Assembly: GCA_002269645.1 (NCBI GenBank)
Contig: NIVC01002313.1
Coordinates: 1 to 64,000 of the forward strand
Source: Macrostomum lignano
Taxonomy: Eukaryota
Length of the DNA: 64,000 bases
Reading direction: 5' to 3'
Below, piece by piece: positions 16,033 to 21,094 of this stretch (positions are counted from its first letter, which is position 1; each line of letters starts with the position of its first letter). The translations under genes and the position numbers were made by a program. The notes under the pieces were generated by a model, which worked only from the letters and a program-made list of their open reading frames with translations, was not told the origin of the DNA and did not search any database.

Positions 16033-17349
16033 CCAGGCTGCTTAATAAGTTCGCGGAAAAACATACTTATAGTTATCGCACAGTCGTGAAATTTTACACA
16101 CACTTAGCCCAACCTAATGGCACTTCTCAACATAGTCCCCAGCCAGATCAACGCATTTCTTCATCCGATGAAACCACGCCGCAAAGCAGTCCCTCAATTC
16201 CGCCTTTGTGACGGCTTCCAGCTCCGCATTCAACGCCTGTTCCAGCTCCTCACGAGTGTCGAAGCGCTTCCCCTTCAGATTTTTCTTGATCTTCGGAAAG
16301 AGAAAGAAGTCTGCAGGCGCGAGGTCGGGCGAGTAGGCCGGATGCGGCAGCAGAGTCAGCTCAGTTGATGCCAAGAACTGCTGCGTGACACTGGCTCTGT
16401 GAGCGGGCGCGTTGTCGTGGTGCAGGAAAATGCCGCGATCTCTGGTCTTTGGCCGCTCTCGACGCAGGAATTCCAGCACCTGCGGCAGGCAGACACTGGA
16501 GTACCAGCTGCCAGTCACTGTGGCTCCCTCCTCGAGCAGAACGGGCGGCAGAATTCCGCACCGACGGAAAAACACCGCAGCCATCACTTTGCCGACGCTT
16601 CGTTCGCGACGAAATTTCAAGGGCGAATCCTCCTCAAAGGCGACCCACTGCTTGCTCTGTACTTTTGTCTCGGGATCATAAAAGTACACCCACGTTTCAT
16701 CACCTGTGAGGATGCCGTCCACCAAATTTGAGGCGCCTGCGTCGAACTTGTCGAGCATGAAGTTCGCAAAATCCACGCGGGCCTGCATCTGAGCCGGCTT
16801 CAGTTGATGAGGGACCCAGCGAGCTGACACCTTCCTCATGCCGAGGTGATCGTGCAAGATAGTAATGACGCTTGAATCCGAAATCCCGACATGTTTTTCG
16901 ATTTCCCGAATCGTCACTCGGCGGTCTGCATCGAGCAGCTTTCGGACACTGGCCACAGTCGTGTCCGAGATGGACGAATTTGGACGGCTTTCACGTTCAT
17001 CATCGTCCAGCTCCAGACAGCCGGAGCGGAATCGACCGAACCACTTGTACACCATCGTCTGGGATGGGGCTTCACTCTCAAGGGCCTTTTTAAGCGTCTG
17101 CAAGCATTCGGAGGCAGACAGGCCAAGCCGGAATTGGACCAGAATTGCGACTCGCCTGTCGCGCTCAGTCAGGCGCAGCACTGGAGCGGGGGTTTCATCA
17201 CTTCTTCGGCCACTGCGTCGCAACATTTTGGCCAAACTGGCTGAAAATTTGTGTGAAAGGTGCCAATATCTGAAGGAAAAAGTTCATAAAATTTCGTTTG
17301 ATTCGCTTGAAGATAAGTTTGGTTTTCCGCGAACTTATTAAGCAGCCCT
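16033..17349 (-). mobile_element. Full-length mariner (Tc1/mariner, DD34D) transposon, about 1.3 kb
   Basis: Perfect 25-bp inverted repeat GGCTGCTTAATAAGTTCGCGGAAAA at 16036-16060 and 17323-17347. TA at 16031-32 and 17350-51. Encloses the transposase ORF. Confidence 0.95.
16114..17226 (-). CDS. Mariner transposase, intact, 370 aa from first ATG
   Basis: HTH N-terminus, WVPHQL, TGDETW, HHDNAPAH, YSPDLAPAD; 34 residues between the 2nd and 3rd catalytic Asp; no stops or frameshifts. Confidence 0.95.
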   Translation of the reverse strand: MLRRSGRRSDETPAPVLRLTERDRRVAILVQFRLGLSASECLQTLKKALESEAPSQTMVYKWFGRFRSGCLELDDDERESRPNSSISDTTVASVRKLLDADRRVTIREIEKHVGISDSSVITILHDHLGMRKVSARWVPHQLKPAQMQARVDFANFMLDKFDAGASNLVDGILTGDETWVYFYDPETKVQSKQWVAFEEDSPLKFRRERSVGKVMAAVFFRRCGILPPVLLEEGATVTGSWYSSVCLPQVLEFLRRERPKTRDRGIFLHHDNAPAHRASVTQQFLASTELTLLPHPAYSPDLAPADFFLFPKIKKNLKGKRFDTREELEQALNAELEAVTKAELRDCFAAWFHRMKKCVDLAGDYVEKCH

Positions 17350-17948
17350 TATTAAAAACGGTTATAAAAAACGCAGTATTACTGTTAGTAGACGTATAAA
17401 TATATGCCAGTCATTTTGATTTCCTAGAGATAATCCATTTTTTAAAAGAGTTCATTTTTATCAAATTAAATTCTCTGTAGAATTCATAAGTCACATCCAG
17501 ATTCCCAGTTGGCAGCATCTGGCTAAATTGAATTTAAAATTTAAACAAAATTCCACGAACCGTTCTCGGTTCTCACAGGACCCGCCGCGCAGGCTCCTAT
17601 GGGAGTTAAATTAAGACTGAAAGCCGAAATTTCCCATCAAAGTAATATCGAAAATCCAGCTGACAAAATACCGTCGTTAAAATATTTTGAACTCGTCTTT
17701 AGTGTGACGCAACAGTCATATTCTATATTGGGACTCCTGGGATGCTGAGACTGGCGATGCGCCTCATCAAATATTCTCTGCTGCTTCGCATTTTGATTGG
17801 CCCGTGGCAGGCAGACTCAAAACATAGAAATGAAACTGAAGATAAATTATTTAGGAGACTCGAACTAATTGAAATGGAAAATGCGATTTGGAGAATATTA
17901 CTGTCCGGCGAAAAGTCTTTTTAAAGTTGCAGCTCTCTTAATCTACTG

Positions 17949-18460
17949 TAGATAGATAGATAGATAGATAGATAGATAGATAGATAGATAGATACATAGA
18001 TAGATAGATGATAGATAGATAGATAAATAGATAGATAGATAGATAGATAGATAGATAGATGGATAGATAGATAGATAGATGATAGATAGATAGATAGATA
18101 GATAGATAGATAGATAGATAGATAGATAGATAGATAGATAGATAGATAGATAGATAGATAGATAGATAGATAGATAGATAGATAGATAGATAGATAGATA
18201 GATAGATAGATAGATAGATAGATAGATAGATAGATAGATAGATAGATAGATAGATAGATAGATAGATAGATAGATAGATAGATAGATAGATAGATAGATA
18301 GATAGATAGATAGATAGATAGATAGATAGATAGATAGATAGATAGATAGATAGATAGATAGATAGATAGATAGATAGATAGATAGATAGATAGATAGATA
18401 GATAGATAGATAGATAGATAGATAGATAGATAGATAGATAGATAGATAGATAGAGAGATA
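17949..18460. repeat. (GATA)n microsatellite
   Basis: About 125 units. Confidence 0.98.
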
Positions 18461-19388
18461 GACTTATGAGTGGATAAAACATTACTCTCCGAGGTTACCC
18501 AGTGCGAATTCTGAGTGAGTCATAATCCACTTGAGTAGGAGATGAAAAATGAAAATCCGCAAGCCCAGCTAAAAGCAGATTGACAATTTCTGTATTCGGA
18601 CTTGAATCGAGCAACTGCCTGAAGCAGCGGGGCCCTCAAACAGTATCTGTCTTATATAAAGCTTTCAAAGTGTGTATTGACACACGCTGTCTGCAGATCT
18701 GCCCTATGTGCTCAGCATTCAGTCTGGCTCAGTGAGAGGTGGGGCTGGCCTGGTTCGGCAGCCGCTGACTCAGATTCTAATTGGCAGTCTGTGAACGAAA
18801 TTTTGTGTCTGTGTGGGGTGGGTGAGAGAGAATAGAGTTGAGACGATGGTGGCTGACTCGGGTCATGTCAGAGCTCATGGGAGCAGGGAGAGTTTGGGAG
18901 GATAAAATATCGGGGAAGATAACTAGTAGGATGAGAATATTTCCAAGGAATAAAAAGAGAGCCAGCAGCAACCCCAGGAATCGTGAATTGCTCAGTTGTT
19001 CGCCGCGCCGCTGCCACCCTCACCCAACCCCCCCCCTCGAACTCGGGAGGCTGTGTGTAGTGATGAAGGAGGAGATGCAGGCAGGATAGCTAGAGTATAT
19101 TGATTAGCGCAGGCCTGTCCGCCCATGTGAGATCATCGCAGCTCTTAGGGTTGCATGCGCGTTGAAAATTAAAAATATCCCCCAAACCCCCTATAGCCTA
19201 TAGCTCTCCCCTCAATTCCTCCCGTGAGTTATCGTGCTCATCAACGGCTCCCCCTCTCTTGCTGTCCGGGGAAAAAGTAGTGATGTTTTAATATTTTTAT
19301 TAATATTTTCAGTCTGCTCTGTCAGCTGGCCAGTTGATGACGGAGATGATTAAGTCAGCGGAGTTGATGGACTACACAGTTTTGTGTC

Positions 19389-19945
19389 AGAGCCTGTCCT
19401 AATGAGCCTGTCCTACAGATCCTGTCCTAATGAGCCTGTCCCACAGAGCCTGTCCTAATGAGCCTGTCCTACAGAGCCTGTCCTAATGAGCCTGTCCTAC
19501 AGAGCCTGTCCTAATGAGCCTGTCCTACAGAGCCTGTCCTAATGAGCCTGTCCTACAGATCCTGTCCTAATGAGCCTGTCCTACAGAGCCTGTCCTAATG
19601 AGCCTGTCCTACAGATCCTGTCCTAATGAGCTCGTGTAATGCCTCCCTATAGAGCCTGTCCTATAGAACCTGTCCTACATAACTGTCTTATAGAGCCTGT
19701 CCTGCAGACCCTGTCTTACAGACCCTGTCCTACAGAGCCTGTCCTACAGCCCCTTGTCCTTCAGTGTCTGTTCTAATGAGCCTGTCTTACAGACCCTGTC
19801 CTACAGACCCTGTCTTATAGAGCCTGTCCTGCAGACCCTGTCTTATAGAGCCTGTCCAACGGAGCCTGTCTGTAATGAGCCTGTCCTGCAGACCCTGTCT
19901 TATAGAGCCTGTCCAACGGAGCCTGTCTGTAATGAGCCTGTCCTA
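19389..19945. repeat. GAGCCTGTCCTA(AT/CA)-based 14/28-bp array
   Basis: Tandem copies degenerating 3'-ward. Confidence 0.9.
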
Positions 19946-20878
19946 ATAGTGCCTGTCCCACAGTGTCTATTTACATGTAAGTGTCTGTCTTATAGTTTCT
20001 GTCTCATGGTGTCCACCTGTCCTACAGTCTGTCCTACAACGTCAAAATGTTTTACTTTCTTAAAAAAATACCATGCCAAAATATTTGAGCAAAAAAATGG
20101 AACAGAATTAAACAAATAAGTGATGGAATTACAATTTCTACAGGGTGTTATGAAATTCGGTATTAGTAAAGTCAAACCAATCAGACAATATTGTTAACAA
20201 TTAATTCAATCAACCAATGCTTCAACACAAAATTATGAACGAATATTTACGAGTACAGTTTGAAAATTACCGTGAGTAAGTTTTATGGCCTCCTTATCAC
20301 TGGAGCTGGCTGTGGAGCTGTTGCCTGTAAATTATCGAAAGTTCGCAAGCACTGACTAACCTGATGCGACTGATTAATTAAGACCGATAAAGACAGGAAG
20401 GCAACCAGATATTGCAGCAGACAGGGGCCGCAGCCCAGCGGTGCGCTCTGATGTGCCAGCGCCCCAGGCTCGATTCCAAGTGCAGTAACATTAATTTGGG
20501 GCTGAACTGGAATCTCGGCTTGGCTCTGCTCGTGTAATTAGCGCCCTTAAGGGCCAACCCCCAAGGCACAGTGAAGTGTACATGCCTAACGATAAATAAA
20601 GTTAGGGGCCGCTGTGCACTCCTGTGTGAGTGTGTGCCTGTGCGTATGACTGCGTACGTATCCGCGCGCTTGTGTGCCTGCTCAGGGGAGTCGGCGGAAT
20701 GGGCAGCAATGCCTCTCGCTTAAAGTGCACACAGCCCCAAGCCTCTAATAAAGAAAGAAGCAACTCATATCGCAGCAAATTCATGCGTAATAAGATATTT
20801 TTACTTAAATCTAATAACATAATATGTAGCTACTTTAGTAACTTTTTTGTAAAAAAATAAATAATTCAAAGAACTCAC

Positions 20879-21094
20879 CATTCATCTGCACATTGTACCG
20901 GATTCGCCTGCGGCTGGAGCTGCGACCCAGGGCGACGGACTTTTTGCGGACCAGAAACACAATAACCACCAGTACTGTGAGGATGACTGTCACGGCAACG
21001 AATAAGCCGACATAGATGGCTATGTTGCTGAGGGCCACCATGCTGTGCGAGTTGCCTGCGGATAGCGCGTGGGAATGCTGCTGGTGGGGACAGG
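20879..21094 (-). CDS. UNC5: UNC5 exon 6 (transmembrane)
   Basis: ...[29 protein letters not shown]...QMN G|gtgag. The phase-1 acceptor lies in the end of the (CAGA)n array, so the exon starts at 21094, 21106 or 21118. Confidence 0.88.

Follow-up and report, generated by a model that had tools for sequence, protein, structure and literature searches.

A sense-oriented mariner transposon in an UNC5 intron of Macrostomum lignano carries a clade-conserved, acceptor-like motif 14 nucleotides before its transposase

The window analysed here is a stretch of 64,000 nucleotides (nt) from the flatworm Macrostomum lignano (assembly GCA_002269645.1, contig NIVC01002313.1, positions 1 to 64,000 of the forward strand). 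Its minus strand carries a gene for a netrin receptor of the UNC5 family and, within the intron that follows the transmembrane (TM) exon of this gene, a mariner transposon in the same orientation. An earlier reading of this DNA (the original prediction) held that an acceptor-like site upstream of the transposase start codon could fuse the whole transposase to the UNC5 ectodomain and TM segment, giving a decoy netrin receptor or a membrane-tethered transposase. Our analysis suggests that the site belongs to the transposon lineage, where it may serve expression of the transposase.

Pfam matches to the UNC5 N-terminal domain, an Ig domain and the death domain all lie on one strand (minus) of the window. 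In an exhaustive HMMER search the best match for the ZU5 exon is the M. lignano protein 'Netrin receptor UNC5' (PAA87412.1, 56% identity), and the next-best are molluscan proteins at 43-44% identity. This orthologue is a normal UNC5 of 1041 residues; when it is compared with the window by tblastn, all exons, including that for the TM segment and its successor, align collinearly between 43062 and 10702 with 38-71% identity, and the window gene may be a diverged paralogue relative to PAA87412.1. Word-based protein searches with UNC5 returned no close orthologues, the first being dominated by poly-Q and TSP words and the second giving three unnamed matches.

The TM exon (20879-21032, minus strand, counting the part aligned to the orthologue and the juxtamembrane codons) shows 71% identity to residues 432-465 of the M. 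lignano UNC5, and its frame is set by the alignment over 21032-20931 together with 17 more codons. Its true 5' end lies at about 21.09-21.10 kb; the exact acceptor cannot be fixed because the exon abuts a (CTGT)n-like array (21089-21200) and begins within it. At the 3' end the exon reads ...CAG ATG AAT G at 20879 and is followed by the donor GTGAGT (20873-20878, minus strand), the last base G giving phase 1, so that the original prediction was right in this respect both on the minus strand and in the alignment to the orthologue. The intron spans 5.2 kb (20878-15648) and ends in the native acceptor atatccAG (15649-15648), after which comes the next UNC5 exon (15205-15647, minus strand; ELLLPPETGFG...). 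The native junction 20879 to 15647 is backed by the orthologue, in which ...KHTN/ELLLPPEL (the slash marking the junction) corresponds to ...VQMN/ELLLPPET of the window. All five UNC5 donors inspected (Ig1, Ig2, TSP1, TSP2 and TM, with last exon bases at approximately 42697, 35811, 29540, 27377 and 20879 on the minus strand) are in phase 1 and have the form N/GTGAG(T/A), the classic 1-1 exon-shuffling layout of extracellular modules. Any phase-1-compatible exon placed in these introns would be in frame.

The transposon occupies 1317 bp (16033-17349, minus strand). An inverted repeat with 35-nt arms, 94% complementary, brackets 16036-17347, and a 19-nt core of the terminal inverted repeats (TIRs), TTAATAAGTTCGCGGAAAA, is identical at both ends and occurs nowhere else in the window. 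The 5' TIR, AGGGCTGCTTAATAAGTTCGCGGAAAA (17323-17349, minus strand), has the terminal CG of the clade consensus absent or altered, and the 3' TIR, CCAGGCTGCTTAATAAGTTCGCGGAAAA on the plus strand (16033-16060), differs from the clade tip CGAGGGCTGC by one substitution and the loss of 1 nt. A TA flank is present at 16031-16032 and, if the 5' tip is read as short by 2 nt, also at 17350-17351: the 3' side is ...CCTGG/TA and the 5' side is TA/AGGG only if the tip lacks 2 nt, whereas the relatives have TA/CGAGGG at both ends. Written out with their flanks, the tips are TA/AGGGCTGC on the 5' side and, as reverse complement, TA/CCAGGCTGC on the 3' side, against TA/CGAGGGCTGC in the clade consensus. 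Two full relatives measure 1320 bp, and all three bases missing from the window element are at its tips, which may be impaired in this copy or may be the normal tips of its lineage.

The transposase open reading frame (ORF; 16114-17226, minus strand) is intact and encodes 370 residues followed by TAG, with the ATG at 17226-17224 and the stop at 16116-16114. The product contains a DD34D triad (D176, D271 and D306, the last two being separated by 34 residues) that is invariant among the aligned relatives, the motifs WVPHQL and YSPDLAPAD, Pfam matches to Transposase_1 and DDE_3 (PF01359, PF13358), and an N-terminal HTH_48 (PF17906) at residues 25-69, HTH_Tnp_Tc3_2 and HTH_32 falling below their cut-offs. 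The protein aligns over its full length (residues 24-365) to the Mos1 structure 3HOS with E=8e-43. The element is thus a structurally complete DD34D mariner of the Tc1/mariner superfamily, and the copy is probably young, as its ORF is without defect and its inner TIRs are identical over 19 nt. The closest relatives of the transposase are 370-residue proteins with 78-81% identity encoded on contigs about 1.3 kb long in assemblies of SRA and metagenome data. The contig of one relative, L001 (JGI Ga0248504_1049276), holds at 269-440 another copy's 3' TIR, with about 130 nt between it and the full element downstream, so that two copies adjoin there.

The acceptor-like site consists of the motif AAATTTTCAG followed by C (17240-17250, minus strand). 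The 'aaattttcag' of the original prediction was found base for base at 17250-17241 (minus strand), with its AG ending at 17241, 14 nt before the transposase ATG in an element of the same orientation as UNC5. The sequence directly 3' of this AG, CCAGTTTGG, is a candidate exon start, to which a spliced leader (SL) or a host exon would be joined. The 14-nt linker CCAGTTTGGCCAAA (17227-17240, minus strand) is free of stops in the phase-1 reading (A S L A K). The predicted junction with the TM exon, G+CC AGT TTG GCC AAA ATG, is in frame with all 370 residues and contains no stop, again as proposed, and the stop-free frame reaches up to 17283. A possible branch A lies only about 13 nt from the in-frame AG.

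Whether this site is a peculiarity of one copy can be judged from its relatives, for which contigs were fetched from eleven lineages with 46-81% amino-acid identity to the window transposase. In an alignment anchored on the ATG, [A/T]TTTCAG occurs exactly 14 nt before the start codon in eight of the eleven (58-81% identity), two of which differ in their N-terminal coding sequence. A ninth lineage, at 57% identity, has GTTTTAG at -18, keeping a pyrimidine run and a YAG while sequence and position have changed; the remaining two (60% and 46% identity) are without the motif. Among the four closest lineages AAA[A/T]TTTCAGC is invariant, as against about 17% of the other columns of the 5' untranslated region (5'UTR) outside the TIR. 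The heptamer is the information maximum of the interval from -45 to +45, with 1.86 bits per position, above the start codon region. Between close lineages the synonymous divergence (dS) is about 0.8 and the ratio of nonsynonymous to synonymous divergence (dN/dS) about 0.15, the latter also holding for the window transposase against its relatives, and synonymous sites are about 50% different. With about half of the neutral sites changed, a neutral 10-mer would not have lasted in four lineages, let alone in eight. As a control, 55 loci of distant mariners whose start codon could be defined (30-45% identity, mostly from few projects) were taken from a metagenome scan for related loci, which yielded distant mariners only and no clade members; TTTCAG lies within 30 nt of the ATG in one of the 55. 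The comparison argues that the motif is a selected, ancestral and clade-specific element of the transposon, and not a property of this copy.

Between the TIR core and the ATG the sequence is mostly unalignable between distant lineages, ORF length is nearly fixed (368-370 residues), and the distance from TIR core to ATG is the same in seven lineages (the window element at 17224-17349, L001, L003, L005, L007, L008 and L009). A degenerate second copy of the motif, GTAAAATTTCAC, is found just after the stop codon of the window element (16086-16097, minus strand) and is degenerate in L001 too. Three further accounts of the motif were considered and set aside. A subterminal inverted repeat, suggested by its palindromic core, is at odds with the direct orientation of the 3' copy in L007 and L008; an intron within the transposon's own 5'UTR would need a donor, and no conserved donor lies upstream of the motif; and the upstream ATGs are not in a conserved frame, as an N-terminal coding extension through the motif would require.

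We judge it somewhat probable, from the comparative data, that the motif functions as a splice acceptor. It is a consensus-grade YnCAG, and the lineage at 57% identity, which keeps acceptor character only, is more easily reconciled with a splice site than with an initiator or a specific binding site for a protein. The host adds a further consideration. In three species of Macrostomum 20-30% of genes are trans-spliced (PMC8629364, PMC10468722), and the top motif at the SL acceptors of M. lignano is [T/C]TNCAG, cis acceptors being enriched only for CAG (PMC8629364). The TTTCAG found 14 nt before the ATG fits this SL-acceptor motif exactly. Among its caveats the original prediction allowed for a role of the site in trans-splicing of the mRNA of the transposon itself; given the macrostomid host and the [T/C]TNCAG acceptor, this now appears to be the better-supported reading. 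No SL exon of M. lignano and no Rfam SL RNA was found in the 64-kb window, which says nothing either way, and a literature search found no relevant reports of SL trans-splicing of mariner or other transposase mRNAs. A mariner of another lineage in M. lignano (NIVC01001731.1:187491-191257, 43% identity) has CTGCAG 2 nt before its ATG; this is weak backing for an SL-acceptor role, the relaxed motif being common in the controls. That element lies antisense inside a PI3/PI4-kinase gene, has the tip CGAGGG as in the clade, and is annotated with a gene model that has an intron-like gap in the ORF. The SL of M. lignano itself ends in ATG (PMC8629364). When read on from such an ATG placed at the motif, the sequences of L001 and L008 stop at a TAATG or ATGA overlapping the start codon, a layout resembling termination-reinitiation.

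Several observations weigh against a role in splicing, and some of them favour another explanation: that the motif is not a splice site and is instead a core-promoter initiator, with transcription starting at the A of TCAG so that the leader would measure 16 nt, or an element acting in cis at the DNA level in transposition or regulation, its acceptor likeness being incidental and the element an inert passenger in the intron. The motif contains TCAG, the A of which is preceded at 23-29 nt by an A/T-rich, partly conserved block (ATATGTT); the combination of TCAG with the weakly conserved ATGTT of this block about 25 nt upstream could be an initiator-like start. From tip to ATG the seven lineages measure exactly 125 nt wherever the tip is present, a constancy that splicing does not explain. 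Nor does it explain the second copy, AAATTTCAGC..AATCGG, which L007 and L008 have in direct orientation immediately behind the stop codon. The motif core CTGAAATTTCAG is palindromic, and the first 26 nt of the ORF are unusually conserved as well. As an acceptor, the site of the window has a short pyrimidine tract (TTTTC preceded by ACACAAA) and a C as the base after AG. An SL joined at 17241 would bring in an ATG in a different frame from the transposase, opening an overlapping upstream ORF of 24 codons. Moreover, the related elements come from metagenome and SRA contigs, among them SRR23862443, SRR29421761/2, SRR14639172 and SRR29082276, and splicing at the site, whether in cis or in trans, is a prediction from the DNA sequence. 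On the other side, TCAGC differs from the usual initiator consensus at +3, and the block upstream of it does not form a TATA box. The GTTTTAG at -18 in the 57% lineage and the exact match to the Macrostomum SL-acceptor motif likewise speak against a promoter or DNA element. We regard a promoter or DNA-level function of the motif as unlikely, though by no means negligible, and give the same limited credence to the wider account in which the element is an inert passenger.

If the motif is an acceptor, its fixed position has a direct consequence for the UNC5 fusion, because a 14-nt spacing places the transposase in frame with any phase-1 donor. Since every UNC5 donor inspected is in phase 1, the element would have landed in frame wherever it entered these introns in sense, and all that is left to chance is its orientation, with a probability of about one in two. 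In the clade, six of eight lineages have a phase-1 linker without stops (L001 has TGA and L011 has TAA), compared with about 6.6 of eight expected by chance. This chance rate implies that read-through from upstream exons is not under selection. An open frame with UNC5 is thus to be expected as a by-product of the fixed 14-nt spacing and of phase-1 introns.

It could nevertheless be that the TM donor is joined to 17240 to give a stable mRNA for an Ig-Ig-TSP-TSP-TM-transposase protein, a nascent fusion gene acting as a decoy netrin receptor or a tethered transposase. The geometry of the original prediction stands, as do the first steps of known fusions: a transposon lying in sense within a host intron, an acceptor that it carries upstream of its ORF, and an in-frame, stop-free junction. 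The acceptor, moreover, appears ancestral to the element, as in KRABINER, SETMAR and CSB-PGBD3. An acceptor with an upstream cis donor is expected to be cis-spliced and not trans-spliced, according to Conrad et al. as cited in PMC8629364. Both tips depart from the clade consensus in an element whose ORF is intact, which could mean an immobilised copy. For the later steps we find no support, and the in-frame state is expected by default. Between the transposase stop and the next exon (16114 to 15648) there is no AATAAA, as had been noted, and no ATTAAA; only ACTAAA, AATAAT and AATATA occur. No good donor follows the stop either, the best being CAG/GTGATG at 16704 with a score of 6.5 of 9.5. With neither a poly(A) signal nor a donor leading onward, 3' end formation for the fusion exon is unprovided for, the exon is poorly defined, and an mRNA using the site would carry the stop codon and then a very long 3' part. 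A search of 5.8 billion proteins with the hypothetical fusion retrieved plain transposases only (at most 81% identity), none covering the junction (maximum coverage 86%); the window's own transposase is absent from that collection, and this null is accordingly neither for nor against the fusion. The M. lignano orthologue is an ordinary UNC5, as described above. As for a useful product, a transposase behind a TM helix would be cytoplasmic and membrane-tethered and could not reach DNA, and any truncation after the TM segment, in frame or not, would yield the same 'decoy' ectodomain. Nothing therefore backs the decoy receptor or tethered transposase of the original prediction, and there is no sign of the Ig-Ig-TSP-TSP-TM-transposase protein as a selected product. 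Mechanistically such a fusion could occur, and known cases offer parallels, but it lacks support, and a number of features speak against a product that is efficiently made or selected; as a functional fusion gene we consider it very unlikely.

A further difficulty for the fusion is the competition within the intron. A second acceptor-like site, ctttttccttcAG (17270-17282, minus strand), lies 29 nt upstream of 17241; as the original prediction stated, it is out of frame, and its use would give a tail of 33 residues followed by TGA. This site is specific to the copy, columns 119-131 of the alignment of close lineages being unconserved. In a simple pyrimidine/CAG heuristic applied to the 320 AGs of the intron, 17270 ranks 2nd and 17241 ranks 9th, so that besides the stronger site just upstream at least seven other decoys are equal to or better than the in-frame one. 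The true acceptor ranks only 51st, and for this reason the heuristic is unfit to predict usage and shows only that decoys are abundant. As an acceptor-like site in this intron, 17241 represents no more than chance. The same ranks could be taken to mean that the tandem sites act mainly as an exon trap harming the host, with 17270, 17241 or both truncating UNC5 after the TM segment on a mildly deleterious, polymorphic allele; the youthful look of the element, with its intact ORF and identical inner TIRs, would agree with this, but a heuristic that misses the true acceptor has little predictive value, and we rate an exon trap as quite improbable.

We propose that a complete, probably young DD34D mariner inserted in sense into the 5.2-kb phase-1 intron that follows the UNC5 TM exon. 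The TTTTCAG 14 nt before its ATG would be an ancestral element of the clade that has been kept by selection, and its most likely function would be that of a 3' splice site letting the transposase be expressed from transcripts begun elsewhere. In hosts with SL trans-splicing such a site would accept the spliced leader; otherwise it would be spliced in cis to upstream host exons. Within the UNC5 pre-mRNA, 17241 and the stronger 17270 may both be used at a low level, which would give truncated or chimeric and probably unstable transcripts. For this account as a whole, in which the conserved acceptor serves transposase expression and the UNC5 fusion is a by-product, the sequence comparisons leave us about evenly poised between belief and doubt. 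A bolder version can be offered only tentatively: that this mariner clade has no promoter of its own and hitch-hikes on host transcription through its conserved 3' splice site, SL trans-splicing, in hosts that have it, cutting a capped transposase mRNA from host pre-mRNAs or from read-through transcripts of any kind, and competition from cis splicing in introns yielding chimeras such as UNC5-TM-transposase.

Other features of the locus are recorded here. The promoter region of UNC5 (43240-43330, minus strand) has TATAAAA at 43246-43240, about 75 nt before the ATG (43166), and an inverted pair of CCAAT boxes, CCAAT at 43325-43321 and ATTGG at 43300-43296 (minus strand); no acceptor-like site precedes the UNC5 ATG in that region. 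The UNC5 introns are dense in micro- and minisatellites. The intron that holds the mariner also carries (CAT)59 (15754-15931) just upstream of the native acceptor, (TCTA)129 at 17949-18462 and about 20 copies of a 28-nt minisatellite at 19388-19963. A minisatellite translating on the minus strand as ...WEAGPATEDLGGWPSN... is present in an UNC5 intron at about 29900-30960 and again downstream of the gene at about 5450-6800, and Arg/Glu/Gly-rich minisatellites lie at about 37.2-37.7 kb and 52.0-53.0 kb.

For UNC5 the significance of the insertion is modest: it may yield truncated receptor transcripts, which is relevant to gene annotation. The more interesting result appears to be at the level of the transposon, in a fixed-distance, acceptor-like site within a host that has SL trans-splicing. 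Preservation of the motif at its 14-nt distance, in lineages that differ at about 50% of their neutral sites, is direct comparative evidence of selection, and a possible twist is an SL-dependent, promoter-less expression of the transposase in an SL trans-splicing host. If this is true, SL trans-splicing would be a general means by which a DNA transposon is expressed, and would keep generating fusion transcripts. The question raised is whether DNA transposons are expressed without a promoter through SL or cis acceptors, fusion transcripts arising as a side effect.

Compared with Mos1 and the classical mariners, the window element shares the DD34D triad, the paired HTH, a length of about 1.3 kb, TIRs of 28-29 bp and probably the TA target; it differs in that its transposase is only about 30% identical to that of Mos1, in the CGAGGG-type tips of its clade and in the clade's TTTCAG at -14. 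SL-trans-spliced genes of flatworms resemble it in having a [T/C]TNCAG acceptor a few nucleotides upstream of the start codon in a host lineage that trans-splices, where such a site would free a capped, monocistronic mRNA from a read-through transcript. Unlike those genes, the window site has an upstream cis donor, and the terminal ATG of the SL would be out of frame. KRABINER, which arose from an Mlmar1 mariner in the last intron of ZNF112, is together with SETMAR and CSB-PGBD3 among the fusions born by alternative splicing (Cosby et al., bioRxiv 10.1101/2020.05.07.082677; PMC3459987). A sense intronic transposon, an acceptor borne by it and an open frame are the first steps described for such host-transposase fusions (bioRxiv 10.1101/2020.05.07.082677). 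The window locus is like them in being a sense DNA transposon in a host intron whose whole transposase could be joined to upstream host exons. It differs in its flatworm rather than vertebrate host, in having no poly(A) signal, and in a host part that is a receptor ectodomain with its TM segment and not a nuclear regulatory domain, so that the transposase would be held at the membrane; and its fusion transcript is a prediction. Cosby et al. proposed, on the basis of vertebrate consensus sequences, that DNA transposons are pre-adapted for capture through an acceptor just upstream of the transposase ORF (bioRxiv 10.1101/2020.05.07.082677). The transposon-borne acceptor is thus a known principle, to which the present locus would add an example from an invertebrate mariner clade together with comparative evidence that points to selection.

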